Program-made: the position numbers and the translations under genes | Shown: in pieces, positions 1 to 64,000 of the stretch | How the letters are laid out: the number at the start of each line of letters is the position of its first letter | Numbering within the stretch: position 1 is the stretch's first letter | The notes under the pieces: model-generated | What the model saw: only the letters and a program-made list of their open reading frames with translations | What the model was told of the DNA's origin: nothing | Databases searched by the model: none | Source of the DNA: Octopus sinensis | Lineage: Eukaryota | Assembly: GCF_006345805.1 (NCBI RefSeq) | Contig: NC_043014.1 | Location: 52,700,001 to 52,764,000 of the forward strand | Length of the DNA: 64,000 nucleotides | Reading direction: 5' to 3'

Positions 1-1727
1 GTTTTAGCATTGGTTTCAGAGCCAAATCCAAAACAAAGCTCATAACATTTTCTGAAGAACTCTTTGCTACAGTCAGGTTCTGTTTCTGTGAAATGCTTTC
101 CTAAATTTACATAAATTTGTTTCATTAGCTTTACATCAACTTCATGGGGCTTAACTTCTGAAAACCTAAGACAAAGAAAAGCTTTAAAATATTGCTTATT
201 TTTACAAAGTTTTCGTAACTTTCGTGATAATTCACTTTTATCACAATCCACGAGAAGTTTATTATAAAGTTCTTCATCATCACGGAGTTCCTCTACTGAC
301 TCAATTAATTCCAACAGTTTTTCATTATACTCAATATACCCATGCTTATACACATCAGTCATAATATCCTTTATTCCCCAAATGTCTTTCAGCTTCTTCT
401 GGAAAGGAAGAAATTCTATAGCAGATTTAATAGCAAGGAAGAACCTATCTGTTCCATCGTCTCTAAATTCTCGTTTCAACTCTTCATCATTTTCTTCTTC
501 TGCTAGTATGAAATATAATCTTCCATACAAAATGTTAAAACTAATGTCTTGTATTTTAATATTTGTTTTAAATTGTTCACAACACTCCTGGGCATTTTCG
601 TATTCTTTCAAAGCCAAATATAACAAAATCAAATCGTAGAGAACAGCTCCATTTTCTGGAGAAAGTTTAAGAGCTTCTTTAAAGTGATATTCTATTTTGC
701 CAATGAATTCATTCCTTTCCAATTCAGGAATAGTTCTAGGATATTTAATAAGTTTTCCAAGTGTATTTTCTTCCACAGAAAACTCCTTCTTTGCAGTGAA
801 ACATGTGAATTCTGGAATATGTATTTTTTGATAAGTTAATCCAAGATGATGATGAGAAAATGCTGTTGCATTTATTTCGATTGCTTTTACAAACAATTCT
901 TTTGCTTTATCAAACTTATATAAAGTCTTATAAAAGTTAGCACACTTTTCCAAAACAAAACGGTCATCAGGGGCAAAATGAAGAGCTCTTTGAACATATT
1001 TTTCACTGAATTCCTGATTCTTATGACTATTACATTTCCTTGAAGGTCTCACTTTAAACAAAGCTAATAATGCTAACGTTTTCCCCATTAGGATCTTGTC
1101 AATACAGCGAGGAAAAGCACATCGTATTTTCTCTAAGTACTGTACTGCCTCTGTACTAATTGTGTTTTTTTTATCTTCATCAGAGATCTTTCTTAAACAA
1201 CGATACTGTAACAAAGCTACACCAAATAGACATGAATAATTGCCCGGACAAAAATTGGAAGCCTCTTTGTAAAGTTTGATAGCCCTCTCATAATCATTGA
1301 ATGATATTCGACTTAAACAATAAGCAACATTCATTTTACCTTCTGCTTCTATCTGTTGGAAATCTTCTCTTTTTTCAAGATTGTTAAGATAAACCATAAC
1401 CTCTTTTAACTTATTCATATTTTCATTGTACAGATGAATGAATGCAAGATTGGTTAATGCCAAGAGGTTGTCTGGATTAGTTTCTTGAACTTCATTGGCT
1501 AATCTTTCAGCTTCAATATTCTTATTTAGCTCCCACTGAATAAACACCAAGGTATTCTTGTGGCGAATCTCATCTTCTAAACCAGACACAGTATCGTTAC
1601 TTAATGAATTTTCCAGTTTTTTGTAAAGAGACAACCAATGATCTTTGGTGTAGTGAAAATATTCTCCCATTAAATTCGGAAATCTCTGAATTTTTTCTCT
1701 GTACAATTCTCTTCTGCTTTCGTCATC
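1..1727 (-). CDS. Copy A, large exon 2 of IFIT-like TPR-TIR gene; runs off the window start, so the TIR part is outside the window
   Basis: Colinear with 27505-29231 (offset 27504) with no indels or stops seen by eye. Acceptor ...ttttctttcag|GATGAC at 1728/1727. Absent from the ORF track, presumably because its stop is outside the window. Confidence 0.9.
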
Positions 1728-3639: not shown

Positions 3640-4960
3640 CTAGAACATGACGACACGCTATGGAACAAAGGAGCCAAATCAAACTGGGAATTCCAGGGGA
3701 ATTTCCCTGCTTTCCGTTGATGGAAAAATCCTGGCCCACATCTTTTTCAATATTCTCATCAACAACATCTCCAAGAGCGACTCGCCTGAAGCCCAGTGTG
3801 GCTTCTGCCCAGGCCACAGCACCATGGACATGGTGTTTGCTGTGCGTCAAGTTAAGGAGAAATGTATTGAACAACGGATGGATTTATACTCTGTGTTCAT
3901 AGACCTGACCAAAGCTTTTTGGATCATGCTAACCAAGCATGGCTGCCCACACAAGTTCACCACACTGATAAGACTCTTTCATGGCAATATGAGCAGTGAA
4001 GTTTTTTTGCAATGGTGACCACACCAACTCTTGACATTGGGGCACGAAACAGGGCTGAGTGCTCACCCCCATCTTGTTCAATTTGTTCTTCACACAGGTC
4101 CTGCTTTACACAGTGAAAGACCTAAACCTGGGCATATACATCAAAATATCATTCAGACTGGTCTGTTTTTCCTCCTCCACTCACTCTCTGCTTGAACCAA
4201 GACACTGGAAAAGCTCATCACAGAAGCCCTATTTACAAATGACAGTGTACTTAGGGCACACAAGGAAAATCACCTGCAGACCATTGTTGATCACTTTGCA
4301 GAAGCATGAAAGCTTTTTGGACAGATCATCAGCCTTGACAAAACGGAGACCCTAGTCCAAGCAGCACCAAACACATTTCACTCCAGCCAAACACCACCAT
4401 TGAGGGAGTCCAGCTTAAGTGTGTGGAGAGTTTCAGGTACCTTGGTAGCACAGTCTCAGCCGATGGATCATTGAACAGTGAAACATTATCCAGAATCCGC
4501 AATGCCAGTTAAGAAGCACTTGGAAGACTGAAAATGAAAGTCGTCCAGCAGAAAGGCATCAGACGATCGACAAAGCTCAAGATCTACAAGGCTGTAGTCA
4601 TTTCTACACAATTCTATAGAGGGCAAGCATGGGCCCCCTGGCATCAGCACATCAAACAGCTGGAACAGTTTCACACAAGAGCATTCACTGGTAGGACAGT
4701 GTGACAAACCAACAAAAGTTTGTTCAACAAGCATTCAGTTAATGTTGCTGAAGGCTCAGTTATACTGGACTGACCATGTCATCAGAATGGCTGACAACTG
4801 TGTACTCAGACAGCTGTTCTACAGTGATTTCATGCAGGGCTCATACAAACCAGGAAGGCCTAAACTGAGGTACCAAGGCACCCTGAAAAGTAACCTAATT
4901 ATCTTGAGACTAGCAAGAGAAAGACATCATAGGACAGTATCCAGCTCAATTCAGTCAATA
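3640..4960 (+). mobile_element. RTE-clade LINE reverse transcriptase remnant, frameshifted
   Basis: RGISLLSVDGKIL, PEAQCGF, DMVFAVRQVKEKCIEQ..VFIDLTKAF, LQWTDHV-like and QLFY motifs across split ORFs. Confidence 0.9.
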
Positions 4961-6649: not shown

Positions 6650-6959
6650 CTTCTCTCTCTCTCTCTTTCTCTATATATATATATATCAATATGGAACAAA
6701 TAATTCCCCAGGAATTTTCACACTGGTGACTGCCATGATTCGGTGCAAAACAAATCATGATGGGTTGGGGCTCTATATCATGGTAACGTATGCTGAGGAA
6801 GGTGAGACTATAATGCCAGTCTAGAAACCAGTCCATGTGAGTTCAAATACTTGAATGCATGCTGAGATTGTCTTAGCCCGTTTGCCTTTGGATGGTTGAT
6901 TTCTGTAGTTGTTATCAGCAGGTAGACATACTTAGTATGTCCTTTGATTAATTTTAATA

Positions 6960-6963
6960 CATG

Positions 6964-7035
<72 letters not shown>
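6960..7035. repeat. (TA)n microsatellite, representative of many length-variable (TA)n, (CA)n and (CT)n tracts
   Basis: Seen directly; others at e.g. 9667, 10490, 11570, 24470 and 25130. Confidence 0.95.
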
Positions 7036-7039
<4 letters not shown>

Positions 7040-7459
7040 TACAAATATGGAGATAAAGATTTTCAAGCACAGAATAATGCATGAAAAGTATCGTATCCTT
7101 ATATTGCAGAAAAATTTGTCAGCAGCCAGCCATGAGACTTGAACACTCATCTCTGTGATTACCAGTCAAGCACTTTATCTTTAAGCTAAGCTGCCCAGTG
7201 ACAAATTTTTCTGCAATTTTTAAACTTATAAACTTAGCTTTTTTATAGACGCTGCATGTGAAATTCAGATTACATTATATGTAAACAAAGTTTGCTTTAT
7301 TGGAAGTGTTGAGATGTATTGAGACAGACACATATGGAGAGAAATATTTTCAAGTGCAGAATAAAGCATGAACAGTGTTAATAGCATAATATCGCTGTTC
7401 AAGCATTATTCTTAAAGGTAAAGCAAATAACTTTCACCCCTCTCTGTTCCCTTAATATA

Positions 7460-7990
7460 AAACTAACATTGGTTAAGGATTCCTATCATTCCTAGACAAA
7501 CACTTTTCAGCCACTCACAGATACAGGAAAATATTTAATAGGCTTTCTGTGAAATTATCATATAGCCCCAACTGCAACTGTCACGACCCAGGATCCTCTC
7601 CACTTAACCAACGCTGTGCGACTAAACCTATCTTATATGAGGCAGAAGTTTCTGCAACCCGAAACAATAATACAACTGATGAGAAGACGTCTACTGGATT
7701 ATGTGAAAGAATTTAGAAATCACTCATGCCAGTCATATAGCCTCCTCCTCCTCCTGACATAGGGACAAAATGAAAACTACAAAGTTCGCTAGCTACGTAT
7801 GGACTTTGAAAGATATTGAAACACTTCATGTGATTAAATGGAAAGTAATCCATACTTGATGTGAAGGGATCGAATGAATGTAGACTTTGTTTGGCTGAAA
7901 GAGCACAGATCCTGTTCTGATCTAAGATCCTAACTCTCTATTGAACTCCAGGTCAGGAATTTTCACTGCTTGCATGCATATGTATAAATA
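7460..7990 (+). mobile_element. Penelope-like RT C-terminus and GIY-YIG remnant (also ~34958-35488 and ~58806-59336)
   Basis: Reads FLDKHF..HRYRKIFNR.SVKLSYS...YVWTLKD..IKWK..CRLCLAERAQIL..LLNSRSGIFTACMH across frames. Confidence 0.8.
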
Positions 7991-10760: not shown

Positions 10761-10823
10761 TCTTAACATCTCAAAATGGTAATGAGGAAGGGTTGTCTCC
10801 CCTGAAGCAGAGGATTAAAAACA

Positions 10824-10903
10824 CCCTTACAGACCCGGAAAAGCCCTTAAAGACCCGAAAACGCCCTTACAGACTCGAAAACGCCCTTACAGACCCGAAA
10901 AGG
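10824..10903. repeat. 20-bp minisatellite, 4 units (copy A intron)
   Basis: Units CCCTTACAGACCCGAAAACR and CCCTTACAGACCCGGAAAAG. Confidence 0.95.
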
Positions 10904-11576
10904 CCCAATCAGACAAACGGGGATCTCTAATTTTCCAGTTGTTTACACTTGAAGTGGACACATTTAAAGAAAACTTATTCTAAATAAATGTGTGTAAAGT
11001 GGATGGATTCTCTTCTCTTCCTTGTTGTTGACTTTGCTTTTGTCAAGTGTCAGATATTTTTTCGTCTTCCTCGGCAATTCTAATGAGAATTTTATGACCA
11101 GCTCCGATAGTAAACTTTCGGGAACTTTATTCATTCATGTTTGTTTTTTCTTGGGGAGTTTCTGTCTACTAATTACTTCGATAATCTCAACAGACCAAAG
11201 GTTTCGTGCGTTCGAATGCGCAAAGGATGTGGATTGGTTATTTTGACATTTCAAACTTTTCTATGGCACTAATCCTGTTCGAAACACACGATTATTTCTT
11301 CCCACATACTTACACGCACCACATGTCTAGACATGCAAGTGTTATGCACAAAGATGCATACAAATGCCAAATCGGCACAATTTCCAGGTAGAATATTTTA
11401 TCTGTCATTGCTTCGCAGCTGTTTTGATGGCGTGTTTTATGTGTTTCTTTCTTGTTTTCATCTGCCACGCACACTTTGATATCCAAGACCGACTTTCATT
11501 CTGTTCACAGCTTCCGTCACCGACACACACACACACACACACAGTCATTCACACACGTACACAGATATACATATAT

Positions 11577-11836: not shown

Positions 11837-11887
11837 AAGTAGAATTCCATCCAATTTTTCAATAATTTCCTCGATTTCTTCAGCCAT
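11837..11887 (-). CDS. Copy A first coding exon, MAEEIEEIIEKLDGILL
   Basis: Minus strand reads cagaaaATGGCT...CTACTT|GTAAGT: good start context, consensus donor, phase 0 matching the phase-0 acceptor at 1727. Confidence 0.75.
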
Positions 11888-12238
11888 TTTCTGTCTCTCT
11901 CTTTTTTTTATCCTTTAAAGCAAATTTATAAAACTAAACAAAATAGTTTTCTTTCCTTGTTGTCGACTTTTTTTCTGGTATATTTTGCCAAAATGAAAAT
12001 GTAAATTTCTATAAATGATATATTATATATAAAAATGTTCAATGCAGTTGAATGTGTCCGATCAACAAATATTTTCTAACAACACAGTGAGTGTCTCTTC
12101 CCAGAAACGAAACCCGATTGCAATATTGGATACTGTGAACGGATTCGAAAAATATAGTTGGACTGAAGAAGTGAGACAACTGAAGAATTAGTAAAAACTG
12201 TTTTAACGAAACTTAGAGAATGGCAGAAGTAAACGATG

Positions 12239-12284
12239 TGAAAGTGTGAAAGTGAAAGTTTTGTAGAAAAGAAAATCACTTCCG
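12239..12284. promoter_or_regulatory. ISRE/IRF-E-like element (TGAAAGTGTGAAAGTGAAAGT) plus ETS-like CACTTCCG upstream of copy A
   Basis: GAAAGTGAAAGT at 12248-12259 and CACTTCCG at 12277-12284, about 360-400 nt upstream of the ATG. Confidence 0.55.
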
Positions 12285-13406
12285 CAAAAAACAATCCGGA
12301 TATCAAATGGCTAAGAGTCACTAAAATGAAATTCAAGATTCAAAATAAAACAGAAGTTCTTACAACAAGCATTAAGTATATTAAAACAAATTTATTTCTT
12401 TGGTTTTACTTAAATTTTAAATAAACACAATTTGACCCGTACGAGGATATAGTAACTGGAATAAACCATTTCGTTCAGCGCCCGACCTGTCAGGTGAAAT
12501 ATTTAGACATGAAACAGCACAGATAGTATATCTGTAAGTCAGGTAGGGTAGCATAGTTTAGGCTCAACTGAAGTCCGAATACTTAGGCAGCAGCTTAACA
12601 CTACCGTCTCGTACCTGGCTGCATGGCATTTATTGTGGTCAGGCCTCACTACGATTGCAGGTGTAACATTCTAGTTTAACGGTAAGCACTTTGATCATAA
12701 ATGCATGTAATGTAGACAGGTTTAAATAAATTTGTACTTTTCTCATAACACACACACACACATGTATGTATATTGCTTCAAGCTTCTGTTTTTTGTAGGC
12801 CAGCCCAACCTCCTTTCGGTTACATGCGACAGTTGTATTCTCAGAGTATCTACACAGTAGTTCTTCTCCAACACTGAAGGTGTTGCTCTTATTTTTGAGT
12901 ATGTGATGGAATGTACACATTTCTTTCTTTACAGTTCAGCAGATGTTGTCTGAGTGATAGAATGCCATGTTCAACGGCCGCCTCGACTGACCTTATGCTC
13001 TATTGCTATCACTTTGTTTCGCAAATGTATTTATGTATAGTGGTATATATGGATCCTTGCCCGGATTGGCCTCACCAGCCACCTCCGGTCTCATAGCGGC
13101 AGTTCCACCAGATGATGTCAGTGGTCATCTTCGAACCCGAAGGACGAACATTATTATTATTATTATATATGGATGTATGTGTTTAAGTATGTATGCATGT
13201 ATATATGTCATTATTCAGTTTTATTTTAAGATTTCTTGCCAACAGAGAAACAGCCAGTTTCTAAACTAGATCCAACGCTCTTTCATTAGAATTTCAACAT
13301 CAACAAGATATGTGTGTGTGTGTGTGTGTGTGTGCAAATTTCTGTGTCTCTTTTTATGTTTGTTGCCTCAAACATTTACTTGCATATCTAGACATGCTCA
13401 TATATA

Positions 13407-21280: not shown

Positions 21281-22199
21281 GTATGGAAGCAGTCGGCTCG
21301 TTAACCGTGTATAACTTTTCTCAACTTCAGTAAGCACTGACAACAGAGTATATACAAATGGGGCATTAAACTAGTTAAGACTAACGACAATCCTCGGGTC
21401 TAATCTCAAAGGTGTCTAATATACCAAATTTGAACATTTTCACTTAATTTTAAAATTTCAAAAAGTGAAGGGAAACAGAAAAGGTCCAAGCCGGGTTTTT
21501 TTTTTTTTTCAAATAAATTCACGAGCGAAATACGTGGGCAGAACTAAGTACATTCAAATAAAAACAGCATTTGTCTGTCACCTACTTTTACTTTTTCTTA
21601 TTTTAAATATTTGTCATGTTTAACAAAAGGCACCAATCTTCCATTGTTCCATTGTATCACAAACACATTACTTACGTAAAATAGTTTAAACACTTTCTAC
21701 GTATTTCCTCTTCAATAACTATGAACCACTTTCTTTATATTATGTACTAAGTTATATTACAGAAGATCTCTAACCACCAAGCTCCTTGCTTCATGTTATT
21801 GCATTCAATTATTTCCATGAAGACATTTAATCACTAACGATGCTGGCGATGTAAAAAATATATGAAAACTGAAAAATATTAATATTTGGTCCCACTTGTC
21901 TTCACATGCAGCCAGCCAAACTACTGGGAAATTCCAACGAAGTGTTAATTATCAAAGCCCGCACACTTAACCTCCATTCATGCACATATAGCTAATTGAA
22001 GTACGTGTAGTGTACATTTGTAACGAGTTTTGACATGGTCAGTTACTGTAGCAGTTCAATACTGTTTAGAACGAACAAATAATACTTTTTAAATGTACCA
22101 GTTTCACTTTCTCAAACGAACAAGTGTGGACGGGTCAATAGCTTCTGTGCTCCCACTGCAGTAGGCATCCGTTGATTTCAAGGGACCACGGATGTGTGC

Positions 22200-27056: not shown

Positions 27057-29231
27057 CTAAGATAGACTGCAAAGAAAATTAAAAATATTCACAATGTCAT
27101 CTCTGTGTCCACTTTGGCATTTCAACTGAGGAAAACTTTCTAAATGTTTTGGAATTTCTATATCTTCATGGTTCCTGATCATAAAAATTTGACCAATTTT
27201 AGGTTGTCGATCTTCCATGATTTGTTTGGCATATTCAGTGTGGGTTAAAAACTCTGGTGATATAGTCTTTGAATGTTCTAAATAAATTCCAATATTGCAA
27301 CTGTTTTCTAATATGGTACGAAGGTTTACAGTTTTATATTTTCCCAATATATAGTCACGATTACCAAATGTAACTTTTAACCCAAAGTATTTGTCTAGAT
27401 TCATTCCAATGTTTTCAGCCAGTTCTTCAGAGTTTGGGGATGTTAAAATATAGATATCATAATGAAAGTTAGTTACGATGTCATTCTTTGAACATGCTAA
27501 CCCCGTTTTAGCATTGGTTTCAGAGCCAAATCCAAAACAAAGCTCATAACATTTTCTGAAGAACTCTTTGCTACAGTCAGGTTCTGTTTCTGTGAAATGC
27601 TTTCCTAAATTTACATAAATTTGTTTCATTAGCTTTACATCAACTTCATGGGGCTTAACTTCTGAAAACCTAAGACAAAGAAAAGCTTTAAAATATTGCT
27701 TATTTTTACAAAGGCTTCGTAACTTTCGTGATAATTCACTTTTATCACAATCCACGAGAAGTTTATTATAAAGTTCTTTATTATCACGGAGTTCCTCTAC
27801 TGACTCAATTAATTCCAACAGTTTTTCATTATACTCAATATACCCATGCTCATACACATCAGTCATAATATCCTTTATTCCCCAAATGTCTTTCAGCTTC
27901 TTCTGGAAAGGAAGAAATTCTATAGCAGATTTAATAGCAAGGAAGAACCTATCTGTTCCCTCGTCTCTAAATTCTCTTTTTAAGTCTTCATCATTTTCTT
28001 CGTCTGCTAGTATGAAATATAATCTTCCATACAAAATATGAAAACTAACGTCTCGTATTTTAATATTTGTTTTAAATTGTTCACAACACTCCTGGGCATT
28101 TTCGTATTCTTTCAAAGCCAAATATAACAAAATCAAATCGTAGAGAACAGCTGCATTTTCTGGAGAAAGTTTAAGAGCTTCTTTAAAGTGATATTCTATT
28201 TTGCCAATGAATTCATTCCTTTCCAATTCAGGAATAGTTCTAGGACATTTAATAAGTTTTCCAAGTGTATTTTCTTCCACAGAAAACTCCTTCTTTGCAG
28301 TGAAACATGTGAATTCTGGAATATGTATTTTTTGATAAGTTAATCCAAGATGATGATGAGAAAATGCTGTTGCATTTATTTCGATTGCTTTTACAAACAA
28401 TTCTTTTGCTTTATTAAACTTATATAAAGTCTTATAAAATTTAGCACACTTTTCCAAAACAAAACGGTCATCAGGGGAAAAATGAAGAGCTCTTTGAACA
28501 TATTTTTCACTGAATTCCTGATTCTTCAGAATATTACATTTCCTTGAAGGTCTCAATTTAAACAAAGCTAATAATGCTAACGTTTTCCCCATTAGGATCT
28601 TGTCAATACAGCGAGGAAAAGCACATCGTATTTTCTCTAAGTACTGTACTGCCTCTGTACTAATTTTGCGTTTTTTTTCTTCATCAGAGATCTTTCTTAA
28701 ACAACGATACTGTAACAAAGCTACACCAAATAGACATGAATAATTGTCTGGACAAACATTAGAAGCCTCTTTGTAAAGTAGGATAGCCCTCTCATAATCA
28801 TTGAATGATATTCTTCTTAAACAATAAGCAACATTCATTTTACCTTCTGCTTCTATCTGTTGGAAATCTTCTCTTTTTTCAAGATTGTTAAGATAAACCA
28901 TAACCTCTTTTAACTTATTCATATTTTTATTGTACAGATGAATGAATGCAAGATTGGTTAATGCCAAGAGGTTGTCTGGATTAGTTTCTCGAACTTCATT
29001 GGCTAATCTTTCAGCTTCAATATTCTTATTTAGCTCCCACTGAACAAACACCAAGGTATTCTTGTGGTGAATCTCATCTTCTAAACCAGACACAGTATCG
29101 TTACTTAATGAATTTTCCAGTTTTTTGTAAAGAGACAACCAATGATCTTTGGTGTAGTGAAAATATTCTCCCATTAAATTCGGAAATCTCTGAATTTTTT
29201 CTCTGTACAATTCTCTACTGCTTTCGTCATG
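27057..29231 (-). CDS. Copy B exon 2 (724 aa + stop): IFIT/TTC22-like TPR repeats plus C-terminal TIR-like domain (~27057-27467)
   Basis: IFIT-like motifs: NLLALTNLAFI, DYERAILLYKEA..CPDN..FGVALLQYR, AKFY, FSHHHLGLTY, YHFKEAL, FHILYGR. TIR-like motifs: FHYDIYIL, FGLKVTFGNRDYILG, ILENS. Polypyrimidine tract and CAG acceptor at 29232. Confidence 0.9.
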   Translation of the reverse strand, partial: HDESSRELYREKIQRFPNLMGEYFHYTKDHWLSLYKKLENSLSNDTVSGLEDEIHHKNTLVFVQWELNKNIEAERLANEVRETNPDNLLALTNLAFIHLYNKNMNKLKEVMVYLNNLEKREDFQQIEAEGKMNVAYCLRRISFNDYERAILLYKEASNVCPDNYSCLFGVALLQYRCLRKISDEEKKRKISTEAVQYLEKIRCAFPRCIDKILMGKTLALLALFKLRPSRKCNILKNQEFSEKYVQRALHFSPDDRFVLEKCAKFYKTLYKFNKAKELFVKAIEINATAFSHHHLGLTYQKIHIPEFTCFTAKKEFSVEENTLGKLIKCPRTIPELERNEFIGKIEYHFKEALKLSPENAAVLYDLILLYLALKEYENAQECCEQFKTNIKIRDVSFHILYGRLYFILADEENDEDLKREFRDEGTDRFFLAIKSAIEFLPFQKKLKDIWGIKDIMTDVYEHGYIEYNEKLLELIESVEELRDNKELYNKLLVDCDKSELSRKLRSLCKNKQYFKAFLCLRFSEVKPHEVDVKLMKQIYVNLGKHFTETEPDCSKEFFRKCYELCFGFGSETNAKTGLACSKNDIVTNFHYDIYILTSPNSEELAENIGMNLDKYFGLKVTFGNRDYILGKYKTVNLRTILENSCNIGIYLEHSKTISPEFLTHTEYAKQIMEDRQPKIGQIFMIRNHEDIEIPKHLESFPQLKCQSGHRDDIVNIFNFLCSLS

Positions 29232-39435: not shown

Positions 39436-39486
39436 AAGTAGAATTCCATCAAATTTTTCAATAATTTCCTCGATTTCTTCAGCCAT
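39436..39486 (-). CDS. Copy B first coding exon, MAEEIEEIIEKFDGILL
   Basis: ATG at 39486-39484, GTAAGT donor at 39435-39430, phase 0; one L/F difference from A and C. Confidence 0.75.
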
Positions 39487-39837
39487 TTTCTGTCTCTCTC
39501 TTTTTTTTATCCTTTAAAGCAAATTTATAAAACTAAACAAAATAGTTTTCTTTCCTTGTTGTCGACTTTTTTTCTGGTATATTTTGCCAAAAAGAAAATG
39601 TAAATTTCTATAAATGATATATTATATATAAAAATGTTCAATGCAGTTGAATGTGTCCGATCAACAAATATTTTCTAACAACACAGTGAGTGTCTCTTCC
39701 CAGAAACGAAACCCGATTGCAATATTGGATACTGTGAACGGATTCGAAAAATATAGTTGGACTGAAGAAGTGAGACAACTGAAGAATTAGTAAAAACTGT
39801 TTTAACGAAACTTAGAGAATGGCAGAAGTAAACGATG

Positions 39838-39883
39838 TGAAAGTGTGAAAGTGAAAGTTTTGTAGAAAAGAAAATCACTTCCG
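39838..39883. promoter_or_regulatory. ISRE/IRF-E-like plus ETS-like motifs upstream of copy B
   Basis: GAAAGTGAAAGT at 39847-39858; CACTTCCG at 39876-39883. Confidence 0.55.
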
Positions 39884-40717
39884 CAAAAAACAATCCGGAT
39901 ATCAAATGGCTAAGAGTCACTAAAATGATAGTATATCTGTAAGTCAGGTAGGGTAGCATAGTTTAGGCTCAACTGAAGTCCGAATACTTAGGCAGCAGCT
40001 TAACACTACCGTCTCGTACCTGGCTGCATGGCATTTATTGTGGTCAGGCCTCACTACGGTTGCAGGTGTAACATTCTAGTTTAACGGTAAGCACTTTGAT
40101 CATAAATGCATGTAATGTAGACAGGTTTAAATAAATTTGTACTTTTCTCATAACACACACACACACACATGTATGTATATTGCTTCAAGCTTCTGTTTTT
40201 TGTAGGCCAGCCCAACCTCCTTTCGGTTACATGCGACAGTTGTATTCTCAGAGTATCTACACAGTAGTTCTTCTCCAACACTGAAGGTGTTGCTCTTATT
40301 TTTGAGTATGTGATGGAATGTACACATTTCTTTCTTTACAGTTCAGCAGATGTTGTCTGAGTGATAGAATGCCATGTTCAACGGCCGCCTCGACTGACCT
40401 TATGCTCTATTGCTATCACTTTGTTTCGCAAATGTATTTATGTATAGTGGTATATATGGATCCTTGCCCGGATTGGCCTCACCAGCCACCTCCGGTCTCA
40501 TAGCGGCAGTTCCACCAGATGATGTCAGTGGTCATCTTCGAACCCGAAGGACGAACATTATTATTATTATTATATATGGATGTATGTGTTTAAGTATGTA
40601 TGCATGTATATATGTCATTATTCAGTTTTATTTTAAGATTTCTTGCCAACAGAGAAACAGCCAGTTTCTAAACTAGATCCAACGCTCTTTCATTAGAATT
40701 TCAACATCAACAAGATA

Positions 40718-47500: not shown

Positions 47501-50500
47501 TTGTATGTGTGTGTGTGTGTGTGGCTTCCCCCCCACACACACACCAAGATCCTTATCCAGAAAGTTATCTCTTTTTTATATGCAGGCTTATATGGGAAAC
47601 AAACCACTTTTATAAACAAAAAAATCAAATTAAGGGAGAAGGAACTAAAGTATAAGGAATAACTACCTGAAACGGGAAATGAAATCTCGTATATTTCACC
47701 AGAAAACCCCCATCTAAATGGCTTTGACTTAATATATACATATATATAACCACACATACACATACATGTGTATGTGTGTGCGTGTGTGTGTGTGTGTGTG
47801 TGTACTCCTTTTCTCTTAATTTTTAGTTTAATTGTCACCAGTGACAAGGGTAGTAAAGAAAAGGAAATTGTTGTCGTCTCTTGTGTAAATGGTCATCGTT
47901 TGTATCATCAGAATGTTTAACAAATTTTGAAGGTTCCAGATATCGCAGTCTTTTGAAGCTTATGAATTAAGGAGCCATGTTCCTCCTTCACGAATCCAAG
48001 TGATACTTTGGTCCAGTCTGGTTGCGATATAACCTGGAGCACCGACAATAACAGGTACGAAGTTAAACGTGTATCTTGGATACCAGATTTCCAAACTTCA
48101 CATCAACGATCCATATGAATCCTTTTCTTGTATTTTTCTTACCACATGTAAGGAATGGTATGGAAGCAGTCGGCTCGTTAACCGTGTATAACTTTTCTCA
48201 ACTTCAGTAAGCACTGACAACAGAGTATATACAAATGGGGCATTAAACTAGTTAAGACTAACGACAATCCTCGGGTCTAATCTCAAAGGTGTCTAATATA
48301 CCAAATTTGAACATTTTCACTTAATTTTAAAATTTCAAAAAGTGAAGGGAAACAGAAAAGGTCCAAGCCGGGTTTTTCTTTTTTTCAAATAAATTCACGA
48401 GCGAAATACGTGGGCAGAACTAATATACATTCAAATAAAAACAGCATTTGTCTGTCACCTACTTTTACTTTTTCTTATTTTAAATATTTGTCATGTTTAA
48501 CAAAAGGCACCAATCTTCCATTGTTACGTTGTATCACAAACACATTACTTACGTAAAATAGTTTAAACACTTTCTACGTATTTCCTCTTCAATAACTATG
48601 AACCACTTTCTTTATATTATGTACTAAGTTATATTACAGAAGATCTCTAACCACCAAGCTCCTTGCTTCATGTTATTGCATTCAATTATTTCCATGAAGA
48701 CATTTAATCACTAACGATGCTGGCGATGTAAAAAATATATGAAAACTGAAATATATTAATATTTGGTCCCTCTTGTCTTCACATGCAGCCAGCCAAACTA
48801 CTGGGAAATTCCAACGAAGTGTTAATTATCAAAGCCCGCACACTTAACCTCCATTCATGCACATATAACTAATTGAAGTACGTGTAGTGTACATTTGTAA
48901 CGAGTTTTGACATGGTCAGTTACTGTAGCAGTTCAATACTGTTTAGAACGAACAAATAATACTTTTTAAATGTACCAGTTTCACTTTCTCAAACTAACAA
49001 GTGTGGACGGGTCAATAGCTTCTGTGCTCCCACTGCAGTAGGCATCCGTTGATTTCAAGGGACCACGGATGTGTGCCTGAGAATTTGTGTTAGCTGTTGA
49101 TAGTGGTGCCACATCTGCTGTGGTGGCTGTACAGGCTTACATGCGAGTGGCAGTCACACAGACAATGGCTGCATTCGAAGAAGCCCTCTGCCATCACTAT
49201 TGATCCGTTGTGGTAAGTTCCAGGTTCTCTTCCCCTCACTTCATTCTCTTTTTGCAGTTTTTGGCTCCAGTATGGGCAGTCATTTGCAACCTCCTCCCAT
49301 TTCTGGATGTCCACATCTATTAACTTCATCTCTCTCTCTCTTGCTGATGTCCTTGTCCGAAGAAAAGCTAGTTTTGTGTGTGTGTGTGCGCGCTTTGTGT
49401 TATCTATTAACTAATATCAGTGTAGTCCTTCGTTATTTGAAGTTGAGAATAAACCCCTAATTTATTGATAATTCAAATGTTTTATTACTAAAGATGGAAT
49501 GGATACAGTTAGTTTACCAAATCAAAACCATTTTTTGCACATTTTTAAATTCCTGATTTCAAGGCAGATGACTCATATGGCACAGTATCGTTTCTAACTC
49601 ATTTGTTCTGTGGCACATCCTTAATGCCACAGCAGAGATGATGGATGGAGTTACTGCAACAGTAAATAAATGAAGTGAAACACTGAAATATTTTGTAGAA
49701 TCTGCTAGATTGTATTTTCCAATCTGTGGCTTTTGAGACATTCTAGGGTCTGCGGATAACAGACAAGGTCTTTGACTTTGTTAGTGACCTACTTCAAACA
49801 TCAGATGGTGTTTGGGAAGTCACCTGGTTGTTTCTAGCATGTGTTATATTTGAGTGGGGTGTCTGTATACCCCTGGTTATTCACTGATTTCTTTTCTCTT
49901 TCTCATTCTTCTTACTATTTGCTTTTGTCAGTTATGTTCTTTTCCACTGGAGGAAAGTCGTCATCATTTAACACCTGTTTTCCATACTGGCATGGGTTAA
50001 ACGGTTAGACAGGAACTGCTAACACCAACCACTTTGTAGAGTGTAGTGGGTGCTTTTGTTATTGCACCGGTAACCGCGAGGCCACTATCTAACTTGCAAA
50101 ATTGGTTAAGTGTACCCCTAATTCATGTTGTAGACATACAGGCAATCCTCAACATTGTTTCATTATAACATTCATGTGAAGTAATATAGAATAGTGTGAA
50201 ATATAAATCCACCTAGGGTACCTAAAGTACATACCACAAAAATGAACTGTTGTTTACTATAATTTTTCCTTTCTTTTGGAACTTGTTTTCAATTCAGTAA
50301 AATAGAAAGAAATATATAAACGAGATTGAACAACAATACAAATCATTTTCTTTTTTTGTTTAGTTTTGTTTATCAATATTTAGCAAACAACATCAACATA
50401 TTCATCATATACACAGGTTGGCTGCCTTGAAACCAGCAGGCAGTGGTACCTACATGGTATCAGATTAAGGGCTTTATCAAAGGACACAGTATTTCAGTTT

Positions 50501-51991: not shown

Positions 51992-53878
51992 TATATATAT
52001 AGATAGATAGATAGATATGCACATATAGGTACAGGACATCACAAAACATAAACAACATGAAATACAAAGGCAAGCCTGGTATGCGAACAATGAAACAAAC
52101 AAATGGAAGACAAGACAACTAACATACAGAACGACCCTTCATCAGTTGTTGGGTGTTTATCTCCACTCCATATTTCGAGCAATTCAGAACACTATGTGTC
52201 TTCGTTGTTTCATTTCGTTTGTTGTATGTCCAGTTTTTGTTACCAACTTTCACCTTCAGCAAAAACCAAATTTTATTTCGGTTTCCAGGAGCAACTCTTT
52301 CTCGAAGAAACATATTGTCATGAATTGCTTGAAATATATGTATTATTATTATTATAATATATATTGGCATTCTTTAAATTATTTCTAGACTCAGCTTTTT
52401 ATTCGGTTGCTACATTTAGAATTCTGCAATCATGCACTGTATAGACATTTATGCTGCATTTCAGGATTTTTAGTATAAACGATTGCATATCTACAATTTT
52501 CTTCATTTCAAGGAATATACTACCAACCTCTGCCAGCACTTTATCTGGAGAATGGATTTTCGAGTATTTCCTTTGAAATAGTCTCAGTTTTGTTGTGAAT
52601 TTGACAGTATTATGAGGACATCATCGCTGGGGAAAATAATCTAGGCAATTGCAAACAAATGTCTTCCAACGGTTAAGCCTGATCTCTTCTGTTCTTTGGA
52701 ATATTCATTGGCTCTACGCCCTTAATTTTTTACAAATTTATCACGTTTGTAATTTACCCCTGGATGTCTTTTTTAATCCATTTACAACTCCCAAGGCCAA
52801 CACTATTTTTTCACTCTGGTACAGCAATTTCTTTTGGCATTTAAGTTCTTTTGGTGTCTTTAATAACTTTGAGGTTTTTACTACTTTCACAATCGTAGCA
52901 CCCTTGCTATAACTCATGAGGACAACTGGGGATAAGTCTGATATAGAAGTTTCAAACGATGTCCCCAGAACAAAAGCTAGTCCCCTCTATGGAAACCTGC
53001 AGAATGGTTAACCGTTCATTGCATGCAGGTATGTAAATATTGGAAAGGTACTGAGGTAAGGGTGCATCGGTAGTAGAAACAAGATTTCTGTCAGTGAGGA
53101 AATTAAAAAAAACCATTCACCATGTTTCTGACAATATGGTGGTCACAAATTTCATGGAATATTGTTGTGTGGCCATCTTTGTCAAGTCCAAATACATCCC
53201 TTCTACTTTTGATTGGTAAAGTAGCTGTTTTCACATCCAATTCTAATGTGGCAGTATTTGTTCTTGGACAGAATCTATATTGGGTTTCACACAAGTTATT
53301 TTACTCTTGGAACAGAATCAATTTGTGTTTGATGCTGAATTCTGTGATTTAACTGGTAGATGAAGTCAAAGATGCATGTCTATAATGTTTTGTGTTTGTC
53401 CTGCATCCTCATTTATGGCAAGAATATACAACAGCTTTTTTATTGCTAATGGGAATTTTAATGTTCTCCAGAAGATTTTGGAAAGAAACTAAAGGACTTT
53501 GGTTAGAGGATTTTTACATATTTTTAGGAGAATTGTTGGGAAGCAATCAGGGTCCGGTGCTGAGTTTATATGTATTTTGTCTGAAACAGTTATTCCATCG
53601 ATTTCTTCTACGTCCACGTAAGGCCATGCTATTGAAAGTCTTTGTTGGCTTAGTTGTGTACCAGGAAAATGGTGAAGATATTAGAAGAGTCAGATATGCC
53701 ATTCAGTTCTTTATTCTTTTGAAATTTAGCTGTATTAACATTATCAAGACATATCACTGATGTTCAACTTCATCAGAGACACAGAAACCACCACAATAAC
53801 AGCAGTAACTATCAGGTGGGACACTGCCAAAATACAGCAGACACAGGAAAATGTTCTTCACAATTATGAAAAAACAAA

Positions 53879-56053
53879 CTAAGATAGACTGCAAAGAAAA
53901 TTAAAAATATTCACAATGTCATCTCTGTGTCCACTTTGGCATTTCAACTGAGGAAAACTTTCTAAATGTTTTGGAATTTCTATATCTTCATGGTTCCTGA
54001 TCATAAAAATTTGACCAATGTTAGGTTGTCGATCTTCCATGATTTGTTTGGCATATTCAGTGTGGGTTAAAAACTCTGGTGATATAGTCTTTGAATGTTC
54101 TAAATAAATTCCAATATTGCAACTGTTTTCTAATATGGTACGAAGGTTTACAGTTTTATATTTTCCCAATATATAGTCACGATTACCAAATGTAACTTTT
54201 AACCCAAAGTATTTGTCTAGATTCATTCCAATGTTTTCAGCCAGTTCTTCAGAGTTTGGGGATGTTAAAATATAGATATCATAATGAAAGTTAGTTACGA
54301 TGTCATTCTTTGAACATGCTAACCCCGTTTTAGCATTGGTTTCAGAGCCAAATCCAAAACAAAGCTCATAACATTTTCTGAAGAACTCTTTGCTACAGTC
54401 AGGTTCTGTTTCTGTGAAATGCTTTCCTAAATTTACATAAATTTGTTTCATTAGCTTTACATCAACTTCATGGGGCTTAACTTCTGAAAACCTAAGACAA
54501 AGAAAAGCTTTAAAATATTGCTTATTTTTACAAAGTTTTCGTAACTTTCGTGATAATTCACTTTTATCACAATCCACGAGAAGTTTATTATAAAGTTCTT
54601 TATTATCACGGAGTTCCTCTACTGACTCAATTAATTCCAACAGTTTTTCATTATACTCAATATACCCATGCTCATACACATCAGTCATAATATCCTTTAT
54701 TCCCCAAATGTCTTTCAGCTTCTTCTGGAAAGGAAGAAATTCTATAGCAGATTTAATAGCAAGGAAGAACCTATCTGTTCCATCGTCTCTAAATTCTCGT
54801 TTCAACTCTTCATCATTTTCTTCTTCTGCTAGTATGAAATATAATCTTCCATACAAAATGTGAAAACTAACGTCTTGTATTTTAATATTTGTTTTAAATT
54901 GTTCACAACACTCCTGGGCATTTTCGTATTCTTTCAAAGCCAAATATAACAAAATCAAATCGTAGAGAACAGCTGCATTTTCTGGAGAAAGTTTAAGAGC
55001 TTCTTTAAAGTGATATTCTATTTTGCCAATGAATTCATTCCTTTCCAATTCAGGAATAGTTCTAGGATATTTAATAAGTTTTCCAAGTATATTTTCTTTC
55101 AGAGAAAACTTCTTCTTTGCAGTGAAATATGTGAATCCTGGAATATGTATTTTTAGATAAGTTATTCCAAGATGATGATGAGAAAATGCTGTTGCATTTA
55201 TTTCGATTGCTTTTACAAACAATTCTTTTGCTTTATCAAACTTATATAAAGTCTTATAAAAGTTAGCACACTTTTCCAAAACAAAACGGTCATCAGGGGC
55301 AAAATGAAGAGCTCTTTGAACATATTTTTCACTGAATTCCTGATTCTTCAGAATATTACATTTCCTTGAAGGTTCCAATTTAAACAAAGCTAATAATGCT
55401 AACGTTTGCCCCATTAGGATCTTGTCAATACAGCGAGGAAAAGCACATCGTATTTTCTCTAAGTACTGTACTGCCTCTGTACTAATTTTGCGTTTTTTTT
55501 CTTCATCAGAGATCTTTCTTAAACAACGATACTGTAACAAAGCTACACCAAATAGACATGAATAATTGCCCGGACAAACACTGGAAGCCTCTTTGTAAAG
55601 TTTGATAGCCCTCTCATAATCATTGAATGATATTCTTCTTAAACAATAAGCAACATTCATTTTACCTTCTGCTTCTATCTGTTGGAAATCTTCTCTTTTT
55701 TCAAGATTGTTAAGATAAACCATAACCTCTTTTAACTTATTTATATTTTCATTGTACAGATGAATGAATGCAAGATTGGTTAATGCTAAGAGGTTGTCTG
55801 GATTAGTTTCTCGAACTTCATTGGCTAATCTTTCAGCTTCAATATTCTTATTTAGCTCCCACTGAATAAACACCAAGGTATTCTTGTGGTGAATCTCATC
55901 TTCTAAACCAGACACAGTATCATTACTTAATGAATTTTCCAGTTTTTTGTAAAGAGACAACCAATGATCTTTGGTGTAGTGAAAATATTCTCCCATTAAA
56001 TTCGGAAATCTCTGAATTTTTTCTCTGTACAATTCTCTTCTGCTTTCGTCATC
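53879..56053 (-). CDS. Copy C exon 2 (724 aa + stop): IFIT-like TPR plus TIR-like domain (~53879-54289)
   Basis: Open ORF with 28 aa differences from copy B by hand count; acceptor ttttctttcag|GAT at 56054/56053. Confidence 0.9.
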   Translation of the reverse strand, partial: DDESRRELYREKIQRFPNLMGEYFHYTKDHWLSLYKKLENSLSNDTVSGLEDEIHHKNTLVFIQWELNKNIEAERLANEVRETNPDNLLALTNLAFIHLYNENINKLKEVMVYLNNLEKREDFQQIEAEGKMNVAYCLRRISFNDYERAIKLYKEASSVCPGNYSCLFGVALLQYRCLRKISDEEKKRKISTEAVQYLEKIRCAFPRCIDKILMGQTLALLALFKLEPSRKCNILKNQEFSEKYVQRALHFAPDDRFVLEKCANFYKTLYKFDKAKELFVKAIEINATAFSHHHLGITYLKIHIPGFTYFTAKKKFSLKENILGKLIKYPRTIPELERNEFIGKIEYHFKEALKLSPENAAVLYDLILLYLALKEYENAQECCEQFKTNIKIQDVSFHILYGRLYFILAEEENDEELKREFRDDGTDRFFLAIKSAIEFLPFQKKLKDIWGIKDIMTDVYEHGYIEYNEKLLELIESVEELRDNKELYNKLLVDCDKSELSRKLRKLCKNKQYFKAFLCLRFSEVKPHEVDVKLMKQIYVNLGKHFTETEPDCSKEFFRKCYELCFGFGSETNAKTGLACSKNDIVTNFHYDIYILTSPNSEELAENIGMNLDKYFGLKVTFGNRDYILGKYKTVNLRTILENSCNIGIYLEHSKTISPEFLTHTEYAKQIMEDRQPNIGQIFMIRNHEDIEIPKHLESFPQLKCQSGHRDDIVNIFNFLCSLS

Positions 56054-60761: not shown

Positions 60762-61050
60762 TAACTATATAATCAATAAAAACATATATCAGAAAAGAAG
60801 CACATTCTAAAGAATGGAGCAGTAATTATGACGACAAATATTTTAATTTTAGACAAAGAGTTACCAAAGGCTGCTTATCCACAAAGCCAAAGCCTTGTGG
60901 ACAGCTCATCAGACTAGACAAAGGCAAAAAACATTTAACTTTCTACGTGGCGGACGTTAAGGAAAAGCTCAGAAATCGAGATTTAAGTCTTAACATCTCA
61001 AAATGGTAATGAGGAAGGGTTGTCTCCCCTGAAGCAGAGGATTAAAAACA

Positions 61051-61790
61051 CCCTTACAGACCCGGAAGAGCCCTTAAAGACCCGAAAACGCCCTTACAGA
61101 CCCGAAAACACCCTTACAGACCCGGAAAAGCCCTTACAGATCCGAAAACACCCTTACAGACCCGGAAAAGCCCTTACAGACCCGAAAACACCCTTACAGA
61201 CCCGGAAAAGCCCTTACAGACCCGAAAACACCCTTACAGACCCGGAAAAGCCCTTACAGACACGAAAACACCCTTACAGACCCGGAAAAGCCCTTACAGA
61301 CCCGAAAACACCCTTACAGACCCGAAAACACCCTTACAGACCCGGAAAAGCCCTTACAGACAAGGAAAAGCCCTTACAGACACGAAAACACCCTTACAGA
61401 CAAGGAAAAGCCCTTACAGACCCGAAAATACCCTTACAGACCCGGAAAAGCCCTTACAGACCCGAAAACACCCTTACAGACCCGGAAAAGCCCTTACAGA
61501 CCCGAAAACACCCTTACACACCCGAAAACACCCTTACACACCCGGAAAAGCCCTTACAGACCCGAAAACACCCTTACAGACCCGAAAACACCCTTACAGA
61601 CCCGGAAAAGCCCTTACAGATCCGAAAACACCCTTACAGACCCGGAAAAGCCCTTACAGGCCCGAAAACAACCTTACAGACAGGGAAAAGCCCTTACAGA
61701 ACCGAAAACACCCTTACAGACCCGAAAACACCCTTACAGACCCGGAAAAGCCCTTACAGACCCGAAAACACCCTTACAGACCCGAAAAGG
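61051..61790. repeat. 20-bp minisatellite, 37 units (copy C intron)
   Basis: Exact 20-nt register maintained over 740 bp. Confidence 0.97.
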
Positions 61791-62483
61791 CCCTATTAGA
61801 CAAACGGGAGATCTAATTTTCCAGTTGTTTACACTTGAAGTGGACACATTTAAAGAAAACTTGTTCTAAATAAATGTGTGTAAAGTGGATGGATTCTCTT
61901 CTCTTCCTTGTTGTTGACTTTGCTTTTGTCAAGTGTCAGATATTTTTTCGTCTTCCTCGGCAATTCTAATGAGAATTTTATGACCAGCTCCGATAGTAAA
62001 CTTTCGGGAACTTTATTCATTCATGTTTGTTTTTTCTTGGTTAAAGTCAGTTAGGTGCAGTTGTTTCCTTCTTGGGGAGTTTCTGTCTACTAATTACTTC
62101 GATAATCTCAACAGACCAAAGGTTTCGTGCGTTCGAATGCGCAAAGGATGTGGATTGGTTATTTTGACATTTCAAACTTTTCTATGGCACTAATCCTGTT
62201 AGAAACACACGATTATTTCTTCCCACATACTTACACGCACCACATGTCTAGACATGCAAGTGTTATGCACAAAGATGCATACAAATGCCAAATCGGCACA
62301 ATTTCCAGGTAGAATATTTTATCTGTCATTGCTTCGCAGCTGTTTTGATGGCGTGTTTTATGTGTTTCTTTCTTGTTTTCATCTGCCACGCACACTTTGA
62401 TATCCAAGACCGACTTTCATTCTGTTCACAGCTTCCGTCACCGACACACACACACACACACAGTCATTCACACACGTACACAG

Positions 62484-62747: not shown

Positions 62748-62798
62748 AAGTAGAATTCCATCCAATTTTTCAATAATTTCCTCGATTTCTTCAGCCAT
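62748..62798 (-). CDS. Copy C first coding exon, MAEEIEEIIEKLDGILL
   Basis: ATG at 62798-62796, GTAAGT donor at 62747-62742, phase 0. Confidence 0.75.
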
Positions 62799-63148
62799 TT
62801 TCTGTCTCTCTCTTTTTTTATCCTTTAAAGCAAATTTATAAAACTAAACAAAATAGTTTTCTTTCCTTGTTGTCGACTTTTTTTCTGGTATATTTTGCCA
62901 AAAAGAAAATGTAAATTTCTATAAATGATATATTATATATAAAAATGTTCAATGCAGTTGAATGTGTCCGATCAACAAATATTTTCTAACAACACAGTGA
63001 GTGTCTCTTCCCAGAAACGAAACCCGATTGCAATATTGGATACTGTGAACGGATTCGAAAAATATAGTTGGACTGAAGAAGTGAGACAACTGAAGAATTA
63101 GTAAAAACTGTTTTAACGAAACTTAGAGAATGGCAGAAGTAAACGATG

Positions 63149-63194
63149 TGAAAGTGTGAAAGTGAAAGTTTTGTAGAAAAGAAAATCACTTCCG
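63149..63194. promoter_or_regulatory. ISRE/IRF-E-like plus ETS-like motifs upstream of copy C
   Basis: GAAAGTGAAAGT at 63158-63169; CACTTCCG at 63187-63194. Confidence 0.55.
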
Positions 63195-64000
63195 CAAAAA
63201 ACAATCCGGATATCAAATGGCTAAGAGTCACTAAAATGAAATTCAAGATTCAAAATAAAACAGAAGTTCTTACAACAAGCATTAAGTATATTAAAACAAA
63301 TTTATTTCTTTGGTTTTACTTAAATTTTAAATAAACACAATTTGACCCGTACGAGGATATAGTAACTGGAATAAACCATTTCGTTCAGCGCCCGACCTGT
63401 CAGGTGAAATATTTAGACATGAAACAGCACAGATACTATACCTGTAAGTCAGGTAGGGTAGCATAGTTTAGGCTCAACTGAAGTCCGAATACTAAGGCAG
63501 CAGCTTAACACTACCGTCTCGTACCTGGCTGCATGGCATTTATTGTGGTCAGGCCTCACTACGGTTGCAGGTGTAACATTCTAGTTTAACGGTAAGCACT
63601 TTGATCATAAATGCATGTAATGTAGACAGGTTTTAATAAATTTGTACTTTTCTCATAACACACACACACTCACACACACACACACACACATTCATGTTTG
63701 TATATTGCTTTCTTTGAGTCTAATTTAAGTTCTTGAAAAAGTGCCGGTTGCTAACAAAGCAACAAGTGCGTGTGTGTATGTGAGAATAGGGCGAGTATGT
63801 GACTAAGAATGTGTGAGGCTAACGTGTGTGTTGTGTGTAGCAATTGATGTGTGCTTGTTCAGGTGGTGTGTCTACGTGCTTGCGTGTGTGTGTGTATCTG
63901 TGGTCAAATGGTGTGCATGTATATTGCATGTATATTGTATGTTTGTGGATGAAAATGATGTGTCTATGCACGTGTGTATTTTATTGTCTGTGTTCAGATA

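Follow-up and report, generated by a model that had tools for sequence, protein, structure and literature searches.

A candidate ETS and IRF-type promoter module upstream of tandemly duplicated IFIT-like genes in Octopus sinensis

IFIT genes and their control by interferon-stimulated response elements (ISREs) are usually regarded as an innovation of the jawed vertebrates that co-evolved with interferon (PMC3688568). A stretch of 64,000 nucleotides from Octopus sinensis (CM016876.1, ~52.7 Mb; positions 1-64000, hereafter referred to as the window) raises the question of whether promoters of a comparable type control molluscan genes. The original prediction made for this stretch had placed an ISRE-like promoter, driven by interferon regulatory factors (IRFs) and inducible in an interferon-like manner, in front of an IFIT-like gene. 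The answer favoured here, with about an even chance of being right, is that a compact module consisting of an ETS site and an IRF-type element lies near the transcription start and would make the gene family inducible by IRFs with no need of interferon. On the sequence evidence, virus-inducible control of the octopus IFIT-like gene is plausible.

The motif cluster upstream of the start codon

The window contains a ~27.5 kb segmental duplication present three times in tandem (copies 97-100 % identical). Each unit carries a whole gene, encoded on the minus strand in two coding exons, with the start codons at 11887 (copy A), 39486 (copy B) and 62798 (copy C). All the four motifs named in the original prediction are present on the + strand of the three copies, within 1-2 nucleotides (nt) of where they had been put, and occupy -217 to -398 relative to the ATG, in agreement with the distance of 220-400 nt claimed for them. 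The caution that the copies are not independent also holds, as they are ~99-100 % identical at the promoter and amount to one observation. The motifs are as follows.

12239..12259, minus strand: IRF-E/ISRE-like element of copy A, sense ACTTTCACTTTCACACTTTCA, -352..-372, conserved core CTTTCACTTT
39838..39858, minus strand: IRF-E/ISRE-like element of copy B
63149..63169, minus strand: IRF-E/ISRE-like element of copy C
12277..12285, minus strand: ETS-type site of copy A, + strand CACTTCCGC, sense GCGGAAGTG, -390..-398, kept in the orthologue and the paralogue
39876..39884, minus strand: ETS-type site of copy B
63187..63195, minus strand: ETS-type site of copy C
12205..12213, minus strand: AACGAAACT of copy A, sense AGTTTCGTT, -318..-326, no canonical AANNGAAA site
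12104..12113, minus strand: GAAACGAAAC of copy A, sense GTTTCGTTTC, -217..-226, non-canonical 1-nt spacing
39703-39712 and 63014-63023: GAAACGAAAC of copies B and C, respectively

The most prominent of these is TGAAAGTGTGAAAGTGAAAGT at 12239-12259 on the + strand, which includes an exact IRF element (IRF-E), GAAAGTGAAAGT, at 12248-12259. As the gene lies on the minus strand, the sense-strand readings are ACTTTCACTTTCACACTTTCA for the IRF-E element and GCGGAAGTG for the ETS site. GAAAGTGAAAGT fits the IRF-E consensus GAAA[GC][TC]GAAA[GC][TC] exactly in the three copies and contains AANNGAAA, while AAGTGAAA is located at -370. The element is one mismatch away from the vertebrate ISRE GAAAGTGAAACT, which confirms the one-base distance previously noted. 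The ISRE of the ISGF3 type, GAAANNGAAACT, is not matched (one mismatch), the window element ending in AGT, not ACT. GAAACGAAAC overlaps a sequence resembling a gamma-activated site (GAS), TTCTGGGAA (-219), which is itself not conserved.

The cluster exceeds the background motif frequency both in simulations and in a ranking of the unit. When the 27.5 kb unit was simulated (Markov order 1-3), three GAAAGT units fell within 26 nt in at most 0.3 % of the runs. The strict IRF-E pattern has two matches in the unit against 0.1 expected, the second being located in the tail of a long interspersed nuclear element (LINE), and the pattern allowing one mismatch has eight against 0.82 expected. Positions 12060-12300 rank first among the 200-nt windows of the unit, on both strands, for GAAA[CG], GAAA[CG]T and AANNGAAA[CG]. 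The GAAAGT clustering is no effect of composition.

An explanation that needs no function is that chance or hexamer slippage produced the GAAAGT repeats in a flank rich in AT and GAAA, and that the recent 27.5 kb duplications copied them, their partial retention in relatives being a matter of descent and the gene being driven by other elements. This is judged unlikely, though with a substantial share of the probability. It is favoured by the near-identity of the copies and by the occurrence of perfect ISRE strings in the debris of transposable elements (TEs), and disfavoured by the position of the cluster, which ranks first in the whole unit and lies in the 5' flank of the gene. The perfect vertebrate-type ISRE GAAAGTGAAACT is found at 22100-22111 and 48977-48988 (both on the minus strand), in a LINE-like 3' tail that follows an open reading frame (ORF) with a C-terminal zinc knuckle, where it is probably due to chance; the TEs of the window do carry ISRE-like strings. 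With a further match in a reverse transcriptase (RT) ORF (4530/32045), it indicates that single perfect matches can arise by chance. These ISRE-type matches (22100/48977 and 4530/32045), together with an isolated one at 52246, were set aside as chance occurrences.

In ~142 kb of related loci, ACTTTCACTTT is confined to the regulatory modules of the IFIT-like genes, except for L006:4609, which was rejected as a background match adjoining a short interspersed nuclear element (SINE). The abundant octopus SINE bears a different string, CTTTCAGTTTCC, and most of the GAAACTGAAA matches in the paralogue loci were discounted as they belong to a SINE (CTTCTTTCAGTTTCCGTCTACC).

Related promoters in octopuses and a gastropod

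The promoter was compared with those of an orthologue (O. bimaculoides P0002, locus L002, protein identity 84 %) and of a paralogue (O. sinensis P0009, IFIT5-like, locus L004), the proteins of which are 52-55 % identical and the promoters 69 % identical over ~460 aligned positions. In O. bimaculoides, AAAGTGAAAGT and GCGGAAGTG are retained. Mutations affect AACGAAAC, the second GAAA of GAAACGAAAC, which reads GAAACGATAC there, and the initial G in both the first and the second GAAAGT unit.

The longest intact non-coding blocks of the paralogue promoter are TGCGGAAGT, CTTTCACTTT, AAAACAGTTTTTA and TATATCATTT. Both the core CTTTCACTTT and the ETS site GCGGAAGT, named before the comparison was made, are intact in this promoter, which argues against a neutral origin. 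Motif conservation, which the original prediction had named among its checks, is thus partial: the core and the ETS site are kept, while GAAACGAAAC and AACGAAACT are changed in O. bimaculoides and lost in the paralogue (6/10 and 5/9 positions identical, respectively). Judging from these alignments, AACGAAACT is probably non-functional, and GAAACGAAAC and AACGAAACT probably lie outside the module. At a uniform identity of 69 %, a given 9-10-mer is estimated to have a ~3 % chance of staying intact, and the intactness of two of the four motifs named beforehand is estimated as roughly a 0.5 % event.

A second core, TTTTACTTTCACTTTTGACAC, precedes the ETS site in the paralogue. The resulting ISRE-ETS-ISRE module is tandemly amplified with a period of 356 nt (at least 4.2 copies, 98 % identity; L003:1-1491). 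Additional copies are present inside intron 1 of L004, a locus in which the module is located at 6884-7563 and 4330-4600, and an inverted copy lies further upstream (L004:3150-3700). The amplified modules sit 3.5-5 kb upstream of exon 2 or within intron 1, and a homologous intronic cluster of ~8 ISRE-like units exists in O. bimaculoides (L005:6540-6760). Duplication of the core and amplification of the module likewise speak against neutrality. The exon 1 of the 474-residue paralogues of O. vulgaris and O. sinensis was not found in flanks of 5-10 kb. The longest conserved non-coding block, AAAACAGTTTTTA (12187-12199 on the minus strand, L002:4673-4686 and L004:4644-4656), is placed ~40-55 nt downstream of the ISRE core.

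Independent elements of the IRF type are also present in a third lineage of octopus genes and ahead of a homologue from a gastropod, which is a further argument against a neutral origin. The third lineage, represented by O. vulgaris P0014 (L009) and O. bimaculoides P0161 (L007), is 37 % identical. It carries AAAAGTGAAACT, which ends in ACT, at -316 of P0014, shared with O. bimaculoides (L007:824); the GAAA units are on the sense strand, and a GAAA-rich cluster is also present at -100..-160. The background of AAANNGAAA[CG]T outside the modules is ~0.09 per kb, giving p ~0.04 for a promoter of 500 nt. The exon 1 of the gene in L007 is probably hidden in an assembly gap. The gastropod homologue, Babylonia areolata P0163 (L008), is 24 % identical; its coding sequence occupies one exon, the acceptor of which lies 18 nt ahead of the ATG. 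At L008:2700-2870, 2.2 kb upstream of the ATG, GAAACCGAAAC is situated 30 nt from a perfect kappa-B palindrome, GGGGATTCCCC, and this pair is followed by an initiator-like TCAGT and then by a GT donor. A non-coding first exon can be modelled from these signals, and the modelled exon would contain an upstream ATG. Sites for kappa-B (700 nt upstream) and AP-1, as well as conserved GAS sites, were not found in the octopus promoters examined.

Directly downstream of P0161 in O. bimaculoides lies a gene for an HD-domain protein (Pfam PF01966; L007:8721-10076), possibly SAMHD1-like. About 650-730 nt upstream of its ATG (L007:7990-8100), TTTCGTTTCC, ACTTCC, CACTTTCAGTTTAAGCGGAAA and TATATAA are present.

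The ACT ending of the third lineage bears on the possibility of a vertebrate-style ISRE, read by an ISGF3-like complex of STAT and IRF9 in response to a secreted cytokine of the interferon-like kind and to JAK-STAT signalling. Besides AAAAGTGAAACT in this lineage, the window element being a single base from GAAAGTGAAACT would be in its favour, and an interferon-like protein and a cGAS/STING-TBK1-IRF axis have been described in oyster (PMC8218723). However, the window element ends in AGT, the sole GAS-like site (TTCTGGGAA) is unconserved, and evidence for a cephalopod interferon, IRF9 or STAT2 was not found in the literature searched, so that such control appears very improbable. Of the IRF-driven, interferon-like control proposed originally, a textbook IRF-E and the retention of its core and the ETS site in the paralogue thus stand, whereas an ISRE of the ISGF3 type is not borne out.

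Several observations weigh against a functional IRF-type module, some of them also in favour of the neutral explanation. The orthologue promoter is 90 % identical to that of the window gene, against 86.5-87.5 % in the introns and the downstream sequence; being this near the intron baseline, O. bimaculoides cannot discriminate constraint, and the orthologue was rejected as a footprinting partner. A uniform identity of 69 % would by itself leave about three stretches of 10 nt or more intact among the 460 positions; an intact 10-mer taken singly is therefore weak evidence, and the retention of the motifs is moderate, not strong, evidence. Only O. sinensis has the third GAAAGT unit, which, like two of the four motifs, is unconserved. 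A single canonical IRF site (AAGTGAAA) is conserved, and its 5' half-site may begin with G, C or A. This core 8-mer is only ~2x enriched over composition-matched permutations across 108 kb of the family loci, and replication slippage can generate hexamer repeats. In addition, no such motif was found within 500 nt upstream of the annotated exon 1 of O. bimaculoides P0004, and in O. vulgaris L006 the 10 kb preceding exon 2 did not yield the module either.

The gene, its product and transcription start

The gene model on which the positions given above depend is set out below.

11837..11887, minus strand: exon 1 of copy A, 51 nt, 17 codons (ATG plus 16; MAEEIEEIIEKLDGILL), donor GTAAGT
39436..39486, minus strand: exon 1 of copy B
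62748..62798, minus strand: exon 1 of copy C
1..1727, minus strand: exon 2 of copy A, frame open and running past the start of the window
27057..29231, minus strand: exon 2 of copy B, 2175 nt including the stop codon; IFIT-like TPRs, linker and a C-terminal TIR at ~27060-27485
53879..56053, minus strand: exon 2 of copy C, 724-codon frame intact

Exon 1 is spliced to exon 2 in phase 0, the acceptor of the latter being ...ttttctttcag. The spliced copy B (39486-39436 joined to 29231-27057) encodes 741 amino acids and is 100 % identical over the full length to a protein recorded on the same chromosome, the recorded gene span extending exactly from ATG to stop. The ATG deduced in the original prediction is hence correct, as the splice reproduces the recorded protein. 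The reading frames of copies B and C are intact. A second host gene sharing the same promoter was considered and rejected, the intergenic ORFs being either TE debris (RVT_1, mariner-type transposase) or without a family. The remainder of the unit consists of TE debris, including an RVT_1 fragment in the intron, a mariner-type transposase, LINE tails and SINEs.

The copies differ in a few respects. Residues of copy B at the junction of exons 1 and 2 differ (F12, and HDESS versus DDESR), and copy B is without 192 nt (12330-12521 in copy A, -443..-634), the module being retained. Intron 1 is shorter in copy C (6.7 kb) than in copies A and B (~10 kb each); it includes a minisatellite with a 20-nt unit, AAAACNCCCTTACAGACCCG, at 10818-10906 in copy A (4.4 units) and at 61045-61794 in copy C (~37 units).

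Pfam searches with the 741-residue protein returned TPRs alone. A profile constructed from nine octopus members of the family found IFIT5 as its best match in the PDB (3zgq, E 1.4e-10), followed by IFIT1. The IFIT5 match is collinear over ~320 residues (profile positions 102-424 against residues 94-394) and includes the HHxxGLxY segment, in which SHHRLGLLY aligns with HHQMGLCY; other TPR proteins match the family profile over ~70 residues only. The names 'IFIT5-like' and 'IFIT1B-like' at NCBI are automatic. Invertebrate TPR matches have been placed outside the IFIT clade, and IFITs dated to the jawed vertebrates (PMC3688568).

The C-terminal ~140 residues form a further domain (27060-27485 on the minus strand in copy B, ~53882-54307 in copy C). 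A profile of eight C-termini identified the TIR domains of IL-1RAcP (7fcc, E 1.2e-5) and TLR15/TLR2 (7ylf, E 4.5e-4), with ~20 further TIRs below the threshold. There is also a weak TIR_2 match on P0022, and P0161 bears the UniRef name of a TIR domain-containing protein. As a single sequence the domain had no match in Pfam or the PDB, and its single-sequence AlphaFold 2 model (pLDDT 38) was unusable. A HMMER search of 1.8 billion representatives found many relatives of 750-900 residues that have both the N-terminal region and a C-terminal domain in common, and a word-indexed search with an alignment that included distant relatives added named members in the gastropods Nucella and Babylonia. 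The TPR-TIR architecture is common to the Nucella and Babylonia proteins and many unnamed proteins of 750-900 residues.

The claim of an IFIT-like gene can thus be upheld insofar as IFIT5 and IFIT1 are the best solved relatives and the match is collinear; with a C-terminal TIR, the product is no plain IFIT. The 741-residue protein, with its linker and TIR, does not have the TPR-only architecture found in the short paralogues of 474-510 residues. TIR-coding remnants (SEEVAENIGMNLEI) follow the stop codons of short paralogues of 451-474 residues (L003:6747-6788, L004:12823-12864 and L006:11736-11777), which therefore look like truncated descendants of a TPR-TIR ancestor that have lost the TIR. 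The window gene is read from these profiles as encoding an IFIT-like TPR-TIR fusion. Such an architecture suggests a sensor-plus-signalling protein (or an NADase) rather than a plain RNA binder, and the combination of the TIR with the IFIT-like nature strengthens the immune context.

The position of the module relative to the transcription start was approached through the distribution of ATG triplets, those of the opposite strand appearing as CAT. The nearest upstream ATG and the counts in the last 440 nt before the start codon are listed below.

11888..12371, minus strand: sense-strand ATG-free zone of copy A, putative long 5' untranslated region (5'UTR) plus core promoter
O. sinensis window gene: nearest upstream ATG at -485; 0 ATG, 9 CAT
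O. bimaculoides orthologue (L002): nearest upstream ATG at -506; 0 ATG, 7 CAT
O. sinensis paralogue (L004): nearest upstream ATG at -440; 1 ATG (at the boundary), 8 CAT
O. vulgaris, third lineage (L009): nearest upstream ATG at -451; 0 ATG, 4 CAT

The first-order expectation is 3.3-5.6 ATG per zone and the density far upstream is 8-14 ATG per 440 nt. Strand-specific depletion of this kind is the pattern of selection against upstream AUGs, and would put the starts at least ~300-440 nt upstream of the ATG or make them dispersed. It suggests a long 5'UTR or dispersed transcription starts in three paralogue lineages. Candidate start signals in the zone include TCAGT at -296 and -279, TATATATAA at 12023-12031 (-144) and TATAAAT at ~11924-11930 (-43); the IRF-E element precedes TATATATAA by ~208-228 nt and the TCAGT at -296 by 56-76 nt. 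If the starts are upstream, initiation would not depend mainly on the TATA-like strings (-144 and -43). The TCAGT at -296, as a start, would give the IRF/ETS module a classical proximal position. A further point that tells against the favoured reading is that the module may lie at the transcription start or just inside the 5'UTR, and GAAACGAAAC (~-220) is most likely within it. The placement of the motifs in a promoter is therefore upheld in terms of distance (217-398 nt upstream of the ATG), while the ATG-free zone suggests that they may be at, or inside, the 5'UTR.

This zone also hints that the element is transcribed or overlaps the start, as would be expected if it were functional with a different reader: either PRDM1/Blimp-1, or a start-proximal or 5'UTR element acting as DNA or RNA in basal or tissue-specific expression. 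ETS sites near the transcription start are typical of constitutive TATA-less promoters, which counts on the same side. PRDM1 is a repressor, and AAGTGAAAGTT fits its consensus, (A/C)AG(T/C)GAAAG(T/C)(G/T), which overlaps vertebrate IRF sites. The strict consensus occurs at -373 in O. sinensis and at -385 in O. bimaculoides. Among the octopus promoters examined it is restricted to the window gene and the orthologue, the paralogue and the third lineage being without it; the IRF core AAGTGAAA, by contrast, is present in 4/4. As PRDM1 and IRFs share such sites in vertebrates, PRDM1 binding would be compatible with IRF control. A reader other than an IRF is on balance quite improbable.

Proposed control and its counterparts in other systems

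In the reading favoured here, control would be exerted through the ETS-type site GCGGAAGTG and an IRF-type element ~20-25 nt downstream on the sense strand, with the conserved core AAAGTGAAAG, which in O. sinensis would have been expanded into the perfect IRF-E GAAAGTGAAAGT plus a third GAAAGT unit. An ETS factor would hold the promoter competent. Sensing of nucleic acids or pathogens would then lead an octopus IRF (IRF1/2/8-like) to bind the AANNGAAA repeats near the start, with ACTTTCACTTTC as the candidate IRF-binding sequence, and increase transcription. This would represent an IRF-direct, interferon-independent form of the control known from vertebrate IFIT genes.

The trans-acting part of such a system has been described in related animals. 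Human ISRE and IFN-beta reporters are activated by oyster IRFs (PMC5557890), binding to ISRE is reported for the IRFs of oyster, scallop, shrimp and amphioxus (PMC13524488), and IRF2 is expressed in an octopod and is an immune hub gene in Amphioctopus (PMC10778463). With an IRF-ISRE axis established in molluscs, the octopus module qualifies as a candidate for a native cephalopod promoter targeted by IRFs. A search of the literature on cephalopod IFIT-like genes, these loci and octopus interferon-induced genes found nothing relevant.

More broadly, and with distinctly less than even confidence, it may be proposed that the coupling of IFIT-like effectors to IRF sites (along with NF-kappaB or ETS sites) predates the vertebrate interferon. 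A molluscan family of IFIT-like TPR-TIR proteins, which occurs in both octopods and gastropods and has been amplified in tandem in Octopus, would possess IRF-element promoters, and even enhancer repeats of 356 nt, and IRFs would switch it on directly once nucleic acids are sensed. Should the octopus module respond to IRFs, the regulatory link from IRF to IFIT-like genes would be older than interferon. Cephalopod immunology would also gain a defined promoter that can be induced and a family of marker genes, a field in which, to our knowledge, almost no antiviral effectors or promoters have been defined. The by-products of the analysis are of greater interest, namely the TPR-TIR architecture, the amplified enhancer modules of the paralogue, the gastropod pair of ISRE and kappa-B sites and the ATG-free leader.

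Among the known systems, the vertebrate IFIT genes offer the closest counterparts at several levels. They have two exons and 2-3 ISREs near a TATA box (PMC3688568). The octopus gene shares with them the two-exon structure with a short first exon, the IFIT-like TPR protein and the arrangement in a tandem cluster, and shares with their promoters the tandem GAAANNGAAA motif, the exact IRF-E GAAAGTGAAAGT and several units in one orientation. The ISRE of the vertebrate ISG54/IFIT2 promoter is of the GGGAAAGTGAAACT type. The octopus element differs from the vertebrate promoters in ending with AGT rather than ACT, in having one AANNGAAA site conserved among the octopus relatives and in that it may sit at or inside the 5'UTR. 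The first exon of vertebrate IFIT genes comprises the 5'UTR, the ATG and 2 nt, whereas that of the octopus gene encodes 17 codons, and the octopus protein has an additional TIR domain. We know of no interferon or ISGF3 in cephalopods.

Virus-inducible enhancers of the IFN-beta type, in which IRF and NF-kappaB sites are combined (PRDI/III with PRDII), resemble the Babylonia locus, where GAAACCGAAAC is 30 nt from the perfect GGGGATTCCCC; they differ from the octopus module, the partner site of which is of the ETS type, with no kappa-B found in the 700 nt upstream of the family members examined. PRDM1/Blimp-1 (PRDI-BF1) sites are similar to the extent described above for AAGTGAAAGTT, and differ in the loss of the strict consensus outside the window gene and its orthologue. 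The IRF-ISRE system of other molluscs, comprising CgIRF1/2/8 of Crassostrea gigas and CfIRF1/2 of Chlamys farreri, belongs to the same phylum. These factors are induced by poly(I:C) or virus and activate or bind ISRE promoters (PMC5557890, PMC13524488). The work on them made use of human ISRE or IFN-beta reporters or the CgIFNLP promoter, with no native IFIT-like target and no cephalopod among them, while the system itself is the trans-acting one that the octopus element would need.

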